Source: Paramoeba atlantica (taxonomy: Eukaryota; Protista; Discosea). Taken from it: a DNA stretch of 64,000 bases. Position 1 is the stretch's first letter. Each line of letters starts with the position of its first letter. The stretch lies in assembly GCA_977017575.1 (NCBI GenBank), contig CDRNVI010000087.1:1-64000 (forward strand), written 5' to 3'. The notes beneath the pieces were generated by a model, which searched no databases, had not been told where the DNA came from, and saw nothing but the letters and a program-made list of their open reading frames with translations. Made by a program: the position numbers and the translations under genes. Shown one piece after another: positions 1-62,236 of the stretch.

Positions 1-710
1 CCTCTTTCTTCCTCTTTCTTCCTCTTTCTTCCTCTTTCTTCCTCTTTCTTCCTCTTTCTTCCTCTTTCTTCCTCTTTCTTCCTCTTTCTTCCTCTTTCTT
101 CCTCTTTCTTCCTCTTTCTTCCTCTTTCTTCCTCTTTCTTCCTCTTTCTTCCTCTTTCTTCCTCTTTCTTCCTCTTTCTTCCTCTTTCTTCCTCTTTCTT
201 CCTCTTTCTTCCTCTTTCTTCCTCTTTCTTCCTCTTTCTTCCTCTTTCTTCCTCTTTCTTCCTCTTTCTTCCTCTTTCTTCCTCTTTCTTCCTCTTTCTT
301 CCTCTTTCTTCCTCTTTCTTCCTCTTTCTTCCTCTTTCTTCCTCTTTCTTCCTCTTTCTTCCTCTTTCTTCCTCTTTCTTCCTCTTTCTTCCTCTTTCTT
401 CCTCTTTCTTCCTCTTTCTTCCTCTTTCTTCCTCTTTCTTCCTCTTTCTTCCTCTTTCTTCCTCTTTCTTCCTCTTTCTTCCTCTTTCTTCCTCTTTCTT
501 CCTCTTTCTTCCTCTTTCTTCCTCTTTCTTCCTCTTTCTTCCTCTTTCTTCCTCTTTCTTCCTCTTTCTTCCTCTTTCTTCCTCTTTCTTCCTCTTTCTT
601 CCTCTTTCTTCCTCTTTCTTCCTCTTTCTTCCTCTTTCTTCCTCTTTCTTCCTCTTTCTTCCTCTTTCTTCCTCTTTCTTCCTCTTTCTTCCTCTTTCTT
701 CCTCTTCCTC
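1..710. repeat. Perfect 10-bp tandem array (CCTCTTTCTT)x70 plus one degenerate junction unit; candidate telomere (other strand AAGAAAGAGG)
   Basis: Positions 1-700 are 70 identical units; 701-710 read CCTCTTCCTC. The pyrimidine strand starts the window. The telomere role is inference. Confidence 0.9.
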
Positions 711-1042
711 CTGTAGTACAACCCTGGCACATGGAATGTCAATCGGGCAGAACTTCACGATATTCAAGTTCAAGTAAATAGAATGCGCAGAATTGTATTT
801 GGCGTAAAAAATGCTTGTGACTCTCATCTCAGAACGGAATCGCTTTATCCTACTGACTTAAAACCGGAAACAGTAATTAAGACACAGAGAGCTTCCTTAA
901 TAGGGCATCTTGTGCGCCATCCTACACCGTTTACTACAGCAGTACTATGGAGAACAAATGATGAGGCCTCTAAACCAACATTGTCCGAACGGTGTGCCCA
1001 CGAACTACACTCTGATGTTACTGAAATTACTTACTACTTACT
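708..1042 (+). pseudogene. Inverted 3' end of RTE-like LINE RTE1 (post-RT C-terminus plus short tandem tail)
   Basis: Frame of ORF 783 reads LL*YNPGTWNV...RMRRIVFG...LY...LIGHLVRH, matching the RTE pattern LLYGSETW...RRIL...GH..R; it ends in TTACTTACTACTTACT. Confidence 0.75.
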
Positions 1043-4336: not shown

Positions 4337-4516
4337 TTACAAAAAACGATGGTCTTACAAAAAGCGATGGTCTTACAAAAAACGATGGTCTTACAAAAAA
4401 CGATGATCTTACAAAAAACGATGGTCTTACAAAAAACGATGGTCTTACAAAAAACGATGGTCTTACAAAAAACGATGGTCTTACAAAAAACGATGGTCTT
4501 ACAAAAAACGATGGTA
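4337..4516. repeat. 18-bp tandem repeat x10 (TTACAAAAAACGATGGTC) immediately upstream of the RTE1 ATG
   Basis: Visible directly; translates as LQKTMV x10 in the overlapping spurious ORF. Confidence 0.9.
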
Positions 4517-7040: not shown

Positions 7041-8110
7041 TGGAGAAACAGGCGGAATGAGGTGGAATACAATGGTGTGCTGCATGGCGAGGTTGTGGTG
7101 TTTGTTTGCGCTGTTCAAGTTTTTTGTAAAGATCAAGTTTTTTGTAAAGATCAAGTTTTTTGTAAATTTATTTGCAAAATGGCGGATGCTTCCGGTACAC
7201 GCATGCCCACTGCTATTATGAATCTTCTTGCGTGTTCCAAGCTTGATCGGGGGATTCTTTTCCGTCCTGCGAAGGGTGGAACGAAATCTGCTAAACTCCG
7301 CGCGAGGTCGTTAGGACACATTATGCGACTGCTTTGTTTAGGCGCTAAGCTTGCGGTGGTTTGGAGGTACGCGGATTCATCGAACTACAGTGTGTGGGAG
7401 GGGGTAGTAGAGAGTTGGGTGCCGAGCCTCTGGCGTGTTCGCTCCGCTAAGTGTTCGCGATTTACGCTTCCGTTCCCTCCATGTAGTCCTCACATCGTCC
7501 TCTGTGCTGCTCGGGTTTGTGCGCCTAAGCGTAGACGACGTTTCAAAAAGCGCTCTCGCAAATACAGGGCACAGTCTGGCAAACGTGCTCTCCGTGACTT
7601 GGTGGGCCCTGGGGGCCCCGCTGTGAAGAAAATGTTGAGTGTGGGAACCTTGAACGTGACTACTCTTAAGCTGAAAGGTGAAGACGAGTTTAGCCTACGA
7701 AAGTGCGGACACCTTTGCGAAGTACTTGCCTTCATTGGTCTGAAGGGAATAAATATTCTGGGCCTGCAGGAAACGCGATTCAGATTCCCATCTTCTGAAA
7801 AGTCGGATGTCCTTCACCGCAAAGTACAATATCGGAACGCAGATACAATGGAATGGGATTCGTCAGCACTTTTCCCTTGTCTAAGGTATCTAAAATCAGT
7901 GAAAGGATTATGTCGGGTGAATTTGAGATGGAGGAAGGAGTCGCAACAGTTATTAACGTATATTCTCCTACACGCGATTCTAAGGACGTCGAGGTTACGG
8001 AGTTCTACGGAGAACTCGAACGTTGCTGCTTGAGAATAAGGGAAAGCAACCCGCGTCGCCCATTAATTGTACTGGGCGACTTTAATGCACCTTTGAAACA
8101 TATAACAAAT

Positions 8111-9045
8111 TTATACTTTTTTAGGCTCTTCGTTAAACGCGGTGGTTGCTTTCAACTTAGAAGTCACTCATGCTGCGCGCTTCGCGTTGAAAACTACCGC
8201 CGCGTTTAACGAAGAGCCTAAAAAAGAAAATTTAGCCTGGAAAACGGAAAGATTATAGCCAAAAATAGCCGAATTTCGGGTAAAAATGGGGTTATTTTCG
8301 CATATTTTTGCTCTCAGAGCACTAAATCCGACATTTGCGCGTGGGAAATCACTCGCAGGCATGAATGAAAGCCTACCGAACGTATTGGGTAGAGAATGCG
8401 ACTCCAACCATACCATTCTTTCGACACAAAAATGCCCCTTTAGGTCCGAAAAATACTTTTTCACCTTTTTTAGTCAAAAATGGGTCATTTTGGGGGGCGC
8501 ACCACAGTTCGAAGAAGGGATACCTTGCGAAAACAACTGCGTAGAAAGCTAGTGTAGGTCTCAAACTATCAAAATACAATAGGGGAAACGATTTTGGAAA
8601 AATATTTTTTTTGTCATTTTTTTCGCCAAGTTGAAATTTTTTTCAAAAGCTTTTTTCCGAAAAAATCCGAACTTGGCGCACCCGTCCTGCGGATACGCGG
8701 GGGGGGGTCACCCCCGGGTAGGGGGGTGGAAAATGCGCGCCAAGACCCCGGCTACCCTTTCTGCGGTTTTTTTTCGAAAACTAATTTTTTCGAAAAAATT
8801 TGCTCAACCATGCCCCCCCCCCCTGGACCCCCCACCTGGACCCCCCCCCTGGACCACCCCCCTGGACCCCCCCCATGGACCCCCCATTTTTTTCAATTTT
8901 TTTTTTCAGTTTTGGACCACCGGAGCCCCCTTTTATATTTTTTTCTTCTATTATATTACTGTGTTCCCCTTTATATTTTCACTGTTTTTGTTCACTTTTT
9001 TTTCAATAATCGAGTGTAGAGCGGTAGTTTTACAACCACCGCAAT
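8111..9045. mobile_element. Non-autonomous hairpin-ended DNA element inserted at AT (copy 1)
   Basis: ~40-bp-arm hairpin at 8117-8225, terminal hairpin GCGGTAGTTTTACAACCACCGC, internal GGACCCCCCC repeats. Removing it restores the RTE2 reading ITN/KDLDP. Second copy at 40016-40958. Confidence 0.75.
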
Positions 9046-14164: not shown

Positions 14165-14298
14165 TGGCCAGCTGGCCACCCTTCCACAACATGGCCAGCT
14201 GGCCACCCCTCCACAACATGGCCAGCTGGCCACCCTTCCACAACATGGCCAGCTGGCCACCCTTCCACAACATGGCCAGCTGGCCACTCTTCCACAAC
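14165..14298. repeat. 27-bp minisatellite (ATGGCCAGCTGGCCACCCTTCCACAAC), 4-5 copies
   Basis: Direct tandem copies with a TGGCCAGCTGGCCA palindromic core. Confidence 0.9.
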
Positions 14299-14339
14299 AC
14301 TCTCCCACCCCCGTGGGACTCACTCAGTGGACTCACTCA

Positions 14340-15630
14340 ACGTGAGCCACTGCCCCACGTGGCAGTGCTCTGACTCTCTCACGTGCCACTGTAGGTACAG
14401 TGCCGATGCAGTCACTACCTTACGTGGCAGTACTCTCACTCTCTCACGTGCTACTGCATCTGCACTGCATCACTGCAGTCACTGCCTCACGGGGCATTGC
14501 CTCTCACTCTGCCACTGTATCTACACTGCAATCACTGCCTCACGTGGCAGTACTCTCACTCTCTCACGTGCTACTGCAGCTACGCTGCAGTCACTGCCTC
14601 ACGTGACACTACTCTTACTCTCGCACGTGCCAATACAGCTGCACTGCGATCACTGCCTCACGTGGCAGTACTCTCACTCTCTCGCGTGCTACTGCAGCTA
14701 CACTGCATTCACTGCCTCACGTGGCAGTACTCTCACCCTCTCACGTGCTACTGCAGCTCCACTGCATCACTGCAGTCACTGCCTCACGTGGCAGTAATCT
14801 TACTCTCTCACGTGCCACTGTAGCTACACTGCAGTCACTGACTCTCTCACATTCCACTGTATCTACACTGCATTCACTGCCTCACGTGGCAGTAATCTTA
14901 CCCTCTCACGTGCCACTGTAGCTACACTGCAGTCACTGACTCTCTCACATTCCACTGTATCTACACTGCATTCACTGCCTCACGTGGCAGTAATCTTACT
15001 CTCGCACGTGCCGCTGCAGCTGCGCTGCATCACTGCATTCACTGCCTCACGTGGCACTACTCTTACTCTCTCACGTGCCACTGCAGCTACACTGCATCAC
15101 TGCAGTCACTGCCTCACATGGCAGTGCACTTACTCTCTCACGTGCCACTGCAGCTGCACTGCATCACTGCATTCACTGCCTCACGTGGCAGTACTCTCAC
15201 TCTCTCACGTGCTACTGCAGCTGCGCTGCATCACTGCAGTCACTGCCTCACGTGGCACTACTCTTACTCTCTCACGTGCCACTGCAGCTACACTGCATCA
15301 CTGCAGTCACTGCCTCACATGGCAGTGCACTTACTCTCTCACGTGCCACTGCAGCTGCACTGCATCACTGCAGTCACTGCCTCACATGGCAGTGCACTTA
15401 CTCTCTCACGTGCCACTGCAGCTACACTGCATCACTGCAGCCACTGCCTCACATGGCAGTGCACTTACTCTCTCACGTGCCACTGCAGCTACACTGCATC
15501 ACTGCAGCCACTGCCTCACATGGCAGTGCACTTACTCTCTCACGTGCCACTGCAGCTGCACTGCATCACTGTGCAATCGCTGCCTCACGTGGCACTGCTC
15601 TCACTCTCTCAAGGGCCACTGTAGCTACAC
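14340..15630. repeat. Degenerate ~55-67-bp minisatellite rich in CACGTG, CTGCAG and CACTGC
   Basis: Units such as CACTGCCTCACGTGGCAGTACTCTCACTCTCTCACGTGCCACTGCAGCTACACTGCAT; bracketed with the 27-mer array by a ~60-bp direct repeat near 14079 and 15657. Confidence 0.85.
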
Positions 15631-40015: not shown

Positions 40016-40958
40016 TTTCTTTTTTAGGCTCTTCGTTAAACGCGGTGGTTGCTTTCAACTTAGAAGTCACTCATGCTGCGCGCTTCGCGTTGAAAACTAC
40101 CGCCGCGTTTAACGAAGAGCCTAAAAAAGAAAATTTAGCCTGGAAAACGGAAAGATTATAGCCAAAAATAGCCGAATTTCGGGTACAAATGGGGTCAATT
40201 TCGCATAATTTTGCTCTCAGAGCACTAAATCCGACATTTGCGCGTGGGAAATCACTCGCAGGCATGAATGAAAGCCTACCGAACGTATTGGGTAGAGAAT
40301 GCGACTCCAACCATACCATTCTTTCGACACAAAAATGCCCCTTTAGGTCCTAAAAATACTTTTTCACCTTTTTTAGTCAAAAGTGGGTCATTTTGAGGGG
40401 CGCACCACAGTTCGAAGAAGGGATACCTTGCGAAAACAACTGCGTAGAAAGCTAGTGTAGGCCCCAAACAATCAAAATACAATAGGGGAAACGATTTTGG
40501 AAAAATATTTTTTTTGTCATTTTTTTCGCCAAGTTGAATTTTTTTTCAAAAAAATTTTTCCGAAAAAATCCGAACTTGGCGGACCCGTCCTGCGGATACG
40601 CGGGGGGGTCACCCCCGGGTAGGGGGGTGGAAAATGCGCGCCAAGACCCCGGCTACCCTTTCTGCGGTTTTTTTTCGAAAACTAATTTTTTCGAAAAAAT
40701 TTGATCGACCATGCCCCCCCCCCCTGGACTCCCCCCCTGGACCCCCCCCTGGACCCCCCCCCTGGACCCCCCCCCTGGACCCCCCCCATGGACCCCTCAT
40801 TTTTTTCAAAAAATTTTTTCAGTTTTGGACCACCGGAGCCCCCTTTTATATTTTTTTCTTCTATTATATTACTGTGTTCCTCTTTATATTTTCACTGTTT
40901 TTGTTCACTTTTTTTTCAATAATCGAGTGTAGAGCGGTAGTTTTACAACCACCGCAAT
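40016..40958. mobile_element. Non-autonomous hairpin-ended DNA element inserted at AT (copy 2)
   Basis: Highly similar to 8111-9045. The empty site GACGTATATATTTAT/AGAGATGAAAAC is visible at ~44466-44492, ~47992 and ~51514. Confidence 0.8.
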
Positions 40959-57446: not shown

Positions 57447-57641
57447 GTCGGGTAAGGGAGCTGGTTCCCTGAGGGGAGGGTCCAGGACGGCCCTCCGAGT
57501 ACTGGGCCTAGTCGGTTATCATCCCAGCCTTTTAGAGTGAGGCCGCCAGGAATATTGCGATGAGCGGGTTTGAACTCGCCGTCTGAGCACCATGTGCTTC
57601 AAACTTTGAATTCTTGCCACTCCGCCACCTCCGCCCTTTGT
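57252..57641 (-). mobile_element. tRNA-headed SINE-b inserted antisense in family A with a 14-bp TSD
   Basis: TGGGAAGCACCCAA at 57238-57251 and 57642-57655; A box TGGCGGAGTGG, B box GAGTTCAAACC, two GCAA-capped hairpins, GGATTTTT tail. Confidence 0.88.
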
Positions 57642-60367
57642 TGGGAAGCACCCAACAAACAGCTCCTGACGAAGACGTAGGCCACCTACCAGTGCCAACG
57701 GCGCGCAGCTTCTCCCCTGAGTTTGTGCCGTGCGTAGTTGCGGTGTACCGGGATATTATTTTCGCCTATGAAAAAAGCGACTACGCTGGGCGCCACAAAA
57801 TCTGGAATCAAACACTTTCAGCGATGAAAGTCTCTCTGGCAACAATTCGAAGCTCTAGCGGACGACAACGACGGCGGAAACCACACAAGGAGCACACGAG
57901 CCCGAAGGACGGGTCATCAGAAGAGGCAAAGACAACTGCCGATGACGTGCGAGCAGTAAAGAAAGCGACAAGACTCGTGCTTGAGGGGTGCTCCACTAAA
58001 GCGGCCAAGGTCATGGGTCAGACCTTCACCCGCAACAAGCTGTCCGACGCCGAAACGCTGGAAAAATTGCGAATGCTTCACCCTGAACAAACATGTGACT
58101 TCAAACTGCCAGATGACGCGCCAATCATCGCCGGGATCTCTCCAGAGGAGCTGCGTGCAGCAGGTCGAAGGCTAGCGAAGGGAGTCAGCCCAGGCCCAAC
58201 GGGAACGACTGACAACGTGCTACGACTTCTACTGGACGATGAAGTGTGCTGCACGAGCCTTTGTCACATGATGGCCGATCTACTGAACGGTTTTCTTTCG
58301 CGACAAGTTTTACGGCGGCTAAACAGAGCGAGGTTGATCGCTATCCCGAAACCAGGTGGAGGCGTTCGGCCGGTTGCTATGGGAGACGCTTTTGGAAAGA
58401 TAGCGGGAATCATTCTTTTTCAACGCTATGAGAATACCCTGGAGCCACTTTTTGCGCCAATGCAGCAGGGGATAATGTCAAAAGCGGGCTGCGAGAGGGT
58501 AGTGCACACCCTTCACGAAAAATATTTGACAGGCCACTCCATCCTATCCGTAGACTTGAAAAATGCGTTCAACACCCCCTCCAGGAATGACGTCGCAAAG
58601 CATGTTTTCGGTATCGCAACGCTCCGACCCTTCCAAAGGTATTTTGCCGCTGAATATTCCGAGCAATCTCAGCTTCTCTTCTACGGCAGCGAAGGTAAAT
58701 TGGTCGACACAGTATCAAGTTCCTCAGGAGTAAAACAGGGATCGCCACTATCCACGCTGTATTTCTGCACATACCTACAACCTGTATTGGAAACCCTTGC
58801 AGAAGAATTTCCTGGCATCAACATACATGCGTACATCGACGATATCAATTTGACATCCGAAGATCCGAATCAGCTCACGACCGCTTTTAAAAGGCTGAAG
58901 GCACTTGTCGCATCTAGCAATCTTGCACTATCGGCGCATAAATGTGTTTGGTTTGGTGGCATCCTCGGCAAGTCCATTCCAGAAGCTCTTCAAGCCGAAG
59001 GAGTACAAACCGAGAGCCAGGCCACTAAAGTACTGGGGGCTTTTATTGGAGAAGACGACGCCATCAGTCAAAAACTGCTCCAAAAGATCGGCAAACAAGA
59101 AGTAATATTCCGCAGGCTAAAGCTAATGGGCATGAGTAACGTATCCCTAATCCTTTTGACAAAAAGTGTGAACGTTCGTCAACAGTACTACATGAGGACA
59201 CACAACCCCAAGTCCACGGATCAAACATGTAAACGTTTTGATAGCGAAATCGAGAACGTACTTCAAACATGGATGGGCCCATTGCAGACTAGACAAATTG
59301 ACATAGCAAGGTTACCCCTGAAGAAAGGAGGACTTGGTCTCACGGCATGTCACCCAACGCGCGCGGCTGCTTATGAAGCTTCCCGACACGCAGCTTTTGA
59401 GCATATAAAATCTTTTTCAGCTCGAGTTGTGCCGTCACAGTTTCATAGCACTGAACACGCTGGGACAGCAAATGAACAAGAACTCGCTCGTCAAAAACCA
59501 CCTACTGACGAAATTACCGCTGCAGCGAAACTTCATGAGGAAGCATGGAACAAACTCGTAAGCGATCCACAAATGGCCGGGACGTTAAAAGCAACCTCCA
59601 ATAAGGGGAGTTATGACTGGCTACTGTCCAATGTAAGATATGTACCACCGCACTTATTCGAGCTAGCAGTCATGCCCCGTCTTGGAGTACATCACCCGAG
59701 ACTTCCTGATGCTATGACTTGCCCTGGATGCCGAACATTGATGGATGCAAACACTGCACTAACTCACATCCCCGGATGCGTGCAATGTACAGGTTTCAAC
59801 GCCACAGCGAAGCACAACATGTTGACCAAGTTTCTGTATGATCTTTGCATGAAAGCCGGTATTCCATGCGAAAGAGAGCCGCGTTCTTTTAGCACGTGGA
59901 GTTGTCTAACATGCGGAAATACAGTCGACTACAACAATCAGCATCTCCACCACAAAACATGCGGAGGACGGCAGTTTCATCGCTCAGGCCCGGATCTTGC
60001 GATCTGCTGGAACAGTGGCGTGGTGTTCTACGACCTAACTGTGGTGCACGAGCTCGCGCCTTCCCATCGGAATAAAAAGTGTTCCCAACTCGTACGAGAA
60101 GCTATACAGCGGAAAAATGAAACATACGTCAATAGTGGCATGATTCCGGCGGAAGCTTTTGAGTGCCTTCCTGTCTTGTCCTGCGGGTCTTTACATAAGA
60201 GCACACGGGGCCTAATTAAATCACTGACGGATGTCTGCCTGTTGGATACCCAAAACACCGAACAGGCATTCAAGTTGCTACTCCAAGAGCTGAACGGATC
60301 CGAAGTATACGCACAGCTCCGACATTTTTTGGAGCCTCAAGACTATCAGAAAAGCACTATTCTTTAA
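57614..60367 (+). CDS. Family A RT, CCHC and RLE polyprotein part (917 codons, open)
   Basis: ARLIAIPKPGGGVRPVAMG, VDLKNAFN, GVKQGSPLS, YIDD, LPLKKGGLG, CPGC-x11-H-x3-C, KHN, SGPD..YDLTVVHE..RK. Confidence 0.93.
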   Translation: MPLRHLRPLLGSTQQTAPDEDVGHLPVPTARSFSPEFVPCVVAVYRDIIFAYEKSDYAGRHKIWNQTLSAMKVSLATIRSSSGRQRRRKPHKEHTSPKDGSSEEAKTTADDVRAVKKATRLVLEGCSTKAAKVMGQTFTRNKLSDAETLEKLRMLHPEQTCDFKLPDDAPIIAGISPEELRAAGRRLAKGVSPGPTGTTDNVLRLLLDDEVCCTSLCHMMADLLNGFLSRQVLRRLNRARLIAIPKPGGGVRPVAMGDAFGKIAGIILFQRYENTLEPLFAPMQQGIMSKAGCERVVHTLHEKYLTGHSILSVDLKNAFNTPSRNDVAKHVFGIATLRPFQRYFAAEYSEQSQLLFYGSEGKLVDTVSSSSGVKQGSPLSTLYFCTYLQPVLETLAEEFPGINIHAYIDDINLTSEDPNQLTTAFKRLKALVASSNLALSAHKCVWFGGILGKSIPEALQAEGVQTESQATKVLGAFIGEDDAISQKLLQKIGKQEVIFRRLKLMGMSNVSLILLTKSVNVRQQYYMRTHNPKSTDQTCKRFDSEIENVLQTWMGPLQTRQIDIARLPLKKGGLGLTACHPTRAAAYEASRHAAFEHIKSFSARVVPSQFHSTEHAGTANEQELARQKPPTDEITAAAKLHEEAWNKLVSDPQMAGTLKATSNKGSYDWLLSNVRYVPPHLFELAVMPRLGVHHPRLPDAMTCPGCRTLMDANTALTHIPGCVQCTGFNATAKHNMLTKFLYDLCMKAGIPCEREPRSFSTWSCLTCGNTVDYNNQHLHHKTCGGRQFHRSGPDLAICWNSGVVFYDLTVVHELAPSHRNKKCSQLVREAIQRKNETYVNSGMIPAEAFECLPVLSCGSLHKSTRGLIKSLTDVCLLDTQNTEQAFKLLLQELNGSEVYAQLRHFLEPQDYQKSTIL

Positions 60368-62155: not shown

Positions 62156-62236
62156 GCGTCTATACCCAAATGGTTAAGGGGGCTGACTTGAAATCAGGTG
62201 TGTTCTCACGCGCAGGTTCAAACCATGCTGGGCGCG
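62156..62236 (+). tRNA. tRNA-Ser(TGA) copy with three lesions
   Basis: AAATGG, anticodon-stem C to G (GGGGGCTGAC) and CCATGC. Confidence 0.55.

Follow-up and report, generated by a model that had tools for sequence, protein, structure and literature searches.

Few short sequences of eukaryotes are as conserved as telomere motifs, which the capping proteins of chromosome ends read base by base. Some non-LTR retrotransposons are specific to telomeres, such as TRAS and SART of Bombyx and HeT-A and TART of Drosophila, and GA-rich simple repeats are known as satellites, for instance the AAGAG family of Drosophila. The usual telomere motif follows the formula TxAyGz (PMC7046594). In Dictyostelium, the termini carry A(G)1-8, as reported by Emery and Weiner (1981) according to the citation of that work in PMC7046594. 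Purine-only simple satellites also exist, such as the AGAGGG arrays at barley centromeres, and PacBio HiFi reads are documented to drop out in long GA/TC-rich arrays (PMC9241371).

The array described here opens a 64,000-nt stretch of DNA, referred to below as the window. Like TTAGGG-type telomerase repeats, it is a perfect tandem array of a short unit, terminal in the sequence, with its G-bearing strand directed outwards and a degenerate inner unit beside retroelement-rich DNA. Unlike these repeats, it is built from a 10-nt unit, AAGAAAGAGG, whose G-bearing strand is free of T, is 40% G, has no G run longer than GG and gives neither a predicted hairpin nor a predicted G-quadruplex. The purine-only strand is shared with the termini of Dictyostelium discoideum, which provide a precedent for a T-free telomeric strand; the Dictyostelium repeat is irregular and G-rich, whereas the window array is a strictly regular A-rich 10-mer from what appears to be an unrelated lineage (Euglenozoa). 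An earlier note on this DNA had called a T-free G-strand very unusual, which is slightly too strong in view of Dictyostelium, but a regular A-rich 10-mer telomere would still be new.

The array also resembles GA-rich satellites, such as the barley centromeric AGAGGG arrays (PMC9241371), in its polypurine/polypyrimidine composition, its high homogeneity, its position among retroelements and its apparent under-representation in HiFi reads. It differs from them in that those satellites are long and internal, reaching 10^5-10^6 bp, whereas the visible part of the present array measures 0.7 kb and lies at the edge of a sequence, in telomeric polarity. On the evidence presented below, it is slightly more probable than not that the array is a true chromosome-end repeat. 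That it is a telomere repeat made by telomerase is a more tentative proposal.

Structure of the terminal array

Tandem Repeats Finder (TRF) describes window positions 1-706 as 70.6 copies of CCTCTTTCTT, with a period of 10, 100% matches and no indels. A search with the two-unit 20-mer, allowing up to two mismatches, returns 70 matches, all of them within 1-710, where shuffled sequences predict 0.01. The array is thus homogeneous in the manner of telomeres, its 70.6 short units being 100% identical. The plus strand is pyrimidine-only, and the purine strand, (AAGAAAGAGG)n, runs 5' to 3' towards the window start. In other words, the purine strand has its 3' side outward, which is the polarity of a telomere, at the single end that was tested. 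The unit itself, being T-free with at most GG, falls outside the canonical (TxAyGz)n form.

The inner edge of the array is simple. The innermost unit, at 701-710, reads GAGGAAGAGG on the purine strand and carries two A>G changes relative to the canonical unit; on the plus strand, position 706 is followed by CCTCC, in which 707 and 710 are changed from T to C. Base 711 adds an extra G to the purine strand and is not LINE-derived; sister LINE copies match only from 712, where unique DNA begins. Read along the purine strand, the order is therefore ...GTACTACA, then G, then GAGGAAGAGG, then (AAGAAAGAGG)x70. The coordinates of the array and of its neighbours are collected in Table 1.

Table 1. Features at and near the start of the window (columns: feature, position, strand, basis)
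Candidate telomeric G-strand, 70 identical units	1..700	-	TRF and pattern search
Degenerate innermost unit plus one extra base	701..711	-	Direct reading, sister LINE copies
Inverted LINE ORF piece, 317 bp, from the RT-RNase H interval; abuts the array with its cut end	712..1028	+	phmmer, BLASTP
Repair-junction filler, 14 nt, ACTTACTACTTACT	1029..1042	.	Divergence points of sister copies
Body of the LINE: N-terminal ORF, APE, RT to '...FVYPI' and base 1 of the following codon	1043..4321	-	Pfam Exo_endo_phos, RVT_1; six-frame reading
18-bp tandem array, 9.9 copies, LINE 5' leader	4337..4515	-	TRF; directly upstream of the start codon
Related 18-bp array, 2.9 copies	7115-7166	+	TRF; just upstream of the MADASGT methionine in the second element

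Most of what the earlier note had described in this region is borne out. The 70 invariant 10-bp units are found alike by TRF and by the pattern search, and the C-strand polarity, with the pyrimidine strand 5' at the window start, is seen in the sequence. The single degenerate unit announced for the inner junction is indeed the only one, accompanied by base 711, and the subtelomeric-type debris said to lie beside the array corresponds to retrotransposon debris.

Canonical motif and placement of the organism

Comparison was possible with a closely related long-read assembly (ENA ERZ24900291), of which five contigs (L012-L016, ~65 kb) are up to 99% identical to the LINE copies of the window. Neither the window nor these five contigs contains a TTAGGG/CCCTAA dimer. 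The TTAGGG/CCCTAA hexamer occurs once on the two strands of the whole window, against about 31 expected from length only, a figure that disregards both the repetitiveness and the base composition of the window. Rfam at gathering thresholds finds tRNAs only in the window.

A spliced-leader-like sequence (...ACAGTTTCTGTAC...) is present at retroposon junctions on the related contigs. Copies of the form AACGATAAAGATACAGTTTCTGTACCTTG lie at L012:12494 (+), L012:10384 (-) and L013:1282 (+), all on LINE-bearing contigs, and the copy at L012:12494 directly follows an A-rich tract downstream of a LINE ORF. These copies suggest retroposition of trans-spliced RNAs and a placement of the organism in Euglenozoa. 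Kinetoplastids studied so far use TTAGGG, which is the expected telomere for such an organism. In the Perkinsela, prokinetoplastid and diplonemid genome papers that were found, no nuclear telomere motif is mentioned.

A broken LINE beside the array

The element adjoining the array is a minus-strand non-LTR retrotransposon that extends from about 4321 to 1043; it comprises an N-terminal ORF together with APE endonuclease and reverse transcriptase regions, and has decayed through frameshifts (ORF listing, Pfam). Its outermost piece, next to the array, is oriented opposite to the remainder. This piece has 15 phmmer matches among 1.84 billion proteins, for example to residues 1002-1101 of the 1430-aa protein P0050, whose RVT_1 domain occupies residues 684-929 and whose RNase_H domain occupies 1169-1308. 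In BLASTP, the plus-strand piece begins at P0050 residue 1002 ('YNPGTW', E=1e-23) and the minus-strand body stops at residue 999 ('FDCFVYPI', E=5e-29). The two P0050 residues missing between the pieces are fully explained, as 1043 supplies codon base 1 and 712 supplies base 2, followed by an in-frame TAG. The LINE has lost more than 1 kb in total, comprising its RNase H part, the remaining ORF and the 3' UTR.

Sister copies define the break points closely. Positions 718-1028 are 98.4% identical to L016:1385-1695; sister copies of the plus-strand piece diverge past 1028, and those of the minus-strand body match only from 1043. The filler between these points consists of TTACT motifs copied from adjacent sequence. 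Loose ends of sister copies in public sequencing runs confirm the break points at 712 and 1028/1043. Judged from these boundaries, the LINE was cut a single time inside its ORF, without loss of a base at the cut, and its distal 317 bp were inverted and joined back by way of the 14-nt filler. The filler junction has the look of microhomology-templated end joining. Since the array adjoins an internal LINE cut end, with a flipped piece and a filler beyond it, its inner edge was created when a double-strand break in non-telomeric DNA was repaired. Neither fold-back (inverted duplication) nor twin-priming fits as the origin of the flip, since the inverted sequence has a single copy and comes from the downstream side of the element, the upstream side having kept its orientation.

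An in-frame TAG at window positions 714-716 falls inside a conserved LLYG.ETW-like motif (...V*YNPGTW...). It is common to the sister copies in runs X1-X3, and the L016 copy carries at this site a variant 4 nt shorter, which produces a frameshift instead. Possible explanations are that the master copy is dead, or that the site serves for read-through or for frameshifting.

The window also holds a second copy of this LINE family, at 7062-8033 (+), whose MADASGT N-terminus is the same as in the protein of the first element. The 18-bp arrays of the two elements (Table 1) share GTTTTTTGTAA; they are LINE 5' leaders and do not form part of the terminal repeat.

History of the junction

Two histories could have produced this arrangement. 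In the first, a subtelomeric break would have been followed by inverted capture of the distal fragment and by de novo addition of repeats to the exposed end, as in classical healing. In the second, a two-break inversion would have occurred beside a pre-existing array, with trimming of the fragment's outer end. The first would point to an activity that adds repeats to ends, and the second would be neutral. The locus resembles chromosome healing in its abrupt repeat start at non-telomeric sequence made by a double-strand break and in its imperfect first unit; it differs from a clear case of healing in that inversion beside a pre-existing array yields an identical structure here. The flip is equally explicable by such an inversion, and repeats may have been added de novo. 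Because both histories fit, the junction is counted as compatible with a telomere but not as proof of one; it fits chromosome healing without proving it.

The broken state of the LINE also bears on the suggestion that the array belongs to the retrotransposon, either as its own 3' tail repeat or because a telomere-repeat-specific LINE had inserted into the array. At first sight, a minus-strand element with APE and RT does point its 3' side at the repeats, and a LINE directly against a candidate terminal repeat recalls TRAS/SART and HeT-A/TART. Unlike those elements, however, the window LINE is broken, partly inverted and 3'-less; its far side is free of repeats, and the junction lacks poly(A). 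What adjoins the array is a stretch of internal ORF in inverted orientation, and the element is devoid of its RNase H domain and 3' UTR. Moreover, the L016 sister, which continues through the RNase H ORF, shows no repeat 12-mer on its 11-kb contig, the true 3' boundary of that copy being unmapped. Ownership of the array by the LINE is consequently very improbable. Both specific forms were rejected: a 3' tail repeat because the array touches the inverted fragment (P0050 residues 1002-1101) and not an intact sense 3' end, and a TRAS/SART-like insertion because no units lie past 711 near the element, which is 3'-truncated and rearranged.

Other elements in the window and related contigs

Beyond the array and its LINE, the window contains 17 tRNA-Ser(UGA) genes (ARAGORN) and one further Rfam tRNA match at 62156, spread over 6585-62236 and all on the plus strand. 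The genes are arranged in tandem, with units of ~6.1 kb between 16.5 and 40 kb and of ~3.5 kb between 41 and 55 kb. Within ~25-350 bp downstream of many of them comes the 3' part of an RT-bearing LINE, truncated on its 5' side, and these fragments match residues ~669-916 of the 917-aa ORF at 57614-60367. The pairing suggests either a LINE family that targets tRNA genes or a single insertion multiplied by segmental amplification.

Several further repeats are present. Arrays of CCCCCCCCCTGGA (13 bp, 5-6 copies) occur at 8815-8885 and 40716-40796 within a repeated element, and in front of each array stands a TTTTTTCGAAAACAA repeat. A nested tandem-repeat block at 14165-15630, with periods of 27, 59/67 and 98/134/201 bp, is rich in CACTGCAG and CACGTG. 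On the related contigs, a Helitron-like ORF (Helitron_like_N together with PIF1) and genes for DDE transposases lie beside LINEs at L016:4287-10043 and L014:1-977.

Distribution and abundance of the 10-mer

Within the ~128 kb examined, that is the window and the five related contigs, the unit forms no internal array, and the five contigs (L012-L016) contain no array of the repeat at all. Past position 711, the window has no repeat stretch of at least 13 bases except one 15-nt match at 2688-2704. This match (minus strand, 1.5 units, GAAGAAAGAGGAAGA) lies within the LINE ORF, encodes KKEEE and is conserved in sister LINE copies on L014 and L015. It is probably a chance match in a Lys/Glu-rich stretch; a 15-mer match is nonetheless rare by chance, with a rough estimate of ~0.001 for random sequence.

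In metagenome and prokaryote-genome collections, 12 loci with 3-11 units were found, mostly internal and with decayed margins. None of the 12 matches the window outside the repeat, so that they are ordinary microsatellites of other, unrelated organisms. A literature search with the 10-mer in six rotations returned primers and unrelated purine tracts only. The translated array with 62 flank residues has no match in the protein database searched, and exact ORF products of the window locus are absent from the public assemblies searched. The best protein match of the APE ORF is 94% identical, so ERZ24900291 does not contain the window locus.

Across four public runs (X1-X4), the word depths summed over the repeat come to 19,313, 3,700, 478,680 and 493,156, against 19 to ~900 for the flank. 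The 10-mer is abundant in all four, to an uncertain extent. The ratio of repeat to flank is ~25-190 in X1 and X2 versus >1000 in X3 and X4, and this 10-60-fold spread between runs leaves the abundance uncertain. X1 and X2 have contigs up to 228 kb, and Illumina adapters are seen in X3 and X4. All four runs are represented by contigs built at k=31, in which a 10-bp repeat is collapsed and molecule ends are not visible. Copy numbers derived from depth range from ~10^2 to 10^4 units, varying with the run and with the assumed single-copy depth, and are too loose to serve as an estimate. Among the run contigs listed, none bridges the 711/712 junction; those over the flank are ~2% different from the window and look like sister LINE copies.

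Telomere, satellite or telomerase-free end

Several lines of evidence argue for a telomere. The array is perfectly homogeneous over 70.6 units, with its lone variant unit at the inner edge, and it occupies the window edge in telomeric polarity. Apart from the 15-nt match, neither the remaining 63 kb of the window nor the 65 kb of related contigs contains the unit, and the TTAGGG/CCCTAA dimer is missing from window and contigs alike. Its word depth is far above that of the flank in all four runs. Additionally, the array adjoins a non-natural LINE position that derives from a double-strand break, as expected at a healed or rearranged end. The way in which the sequence ends supports the same reading. 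The window resolves at least 8 repeat copies of 3.5-6.1 kb at ~99% identity, which indicates that the assembly was built on long reads, and a simple repeat of 0.7 kb should not halt a long-read assembly unless the reads end there.

It is at this point that an internal satellite has to be weighed. The array could be a GA-rich simple satellite, for example a pericentromeric one, that is truly much longer and of which HiFi dropout left a perfect 0.7-kb stub at the contig end; the neighbouring LINE debris would then be ordinary heterochromatin. Both purine-only satellites and HiFi dropout in long GA/TC-rich regions are documented (PMC9241371). The repeat-to-flank ratio, 10-60 times lower in X1/X2 than in X3/X4, is what would be expected if one technology under-reads the repeat; the neighbourhood consists only of retroelements and tRNA arrays; and the 10-mer is found as a short internal microsatellite in unrelated organisms. 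The telomeric polarity speaks against it, with the limitation that a single end would have this polarity by chance half of the time. A satellite is thus a serious alternative, though a somewhat doubtful one.

Some of the same observations count against a telomere. The contrast in depth between runs fits a technology-dependent under-representation of GA-rich arrays, and a kinetoplastid would be expected to have TTAGGG. The unit has no T, no G run longer than two and no predicted fold, and it does not obey the TxAyGz formula (PMC7046594).

A third explanation accepts a true chromosome end but dispenses with telomerase. The repeats would then be kept up through recombination, with ALT-like copying from one end to another, or through a retroelement reverse transcriptase that recopies a short template. 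Terminal repeat arrays without telomerase are known in some yeasts (PMC13234504). In this genome, the 18-bp arrays at the LINE 5' leaders raise the suspicion that its LINEs recopy short templates, and a stretch of 1.5 units is kept in the LINE ORF and its sister copies. However, the 10-mer is not derived from the LINE sequence that it touches (712 onward), the units of the LINE-leader arrays differ between elements, and the 15-nt match, which encodes KKEEE, may be due to chance. An end of this kind is unlikely.

Under the telomerase reading, the window edge would be the physical end of the DNA. After the break and the capture of the flipped fragment, repeats would have been added de novo to ...GTACTACA-3', or the fragment would have been rejoined to a pre-existing terminal array. 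The template of the telomerase RNA would read 5'-CCUCUUUCUU-3', in some permutation, replacing the CCCUAA-type template of other kinetoplastids; a matching RNA would bear a CCUCUUUCUUCCUCU-type template. The end would be capped by proteins that read a polypurine/polypyrimidine duplex and not by way of G-quadruplexes.

Implications

If the array is a GA-rich satellite, the practical warning is that arrays of this sort interrupt HiFi assemblies of the genome. The larger proposal is that a spliced-leader-bearing euglenozoan, kinetoplastid- or diplonemid-like, has swapped TTAGGG for a regular, purine-only, A-rich (AAGAAAGAGG)n telomere, and there is about as much reason to accept it as to doubt it. 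If true, a regular T-free strand without a G cluster would be the most extreme known departure outside Dictyostelium. It would imply a re-templated telomerase RNA, together with end-binding proteins that recognise a polypurine/polypyrimidine duplex devoid of G-quadruplex potential, and end protection would then need neither G-quadruplex-prone nor TTAGGG-like DNA. Such an organism, with a 10-nt template that would be readily recognised in RNA sequences, would also offer a clean system in which to follow the co-evolution of telomerase RNA, TRF-like proteins and base J once the motif has been switched.
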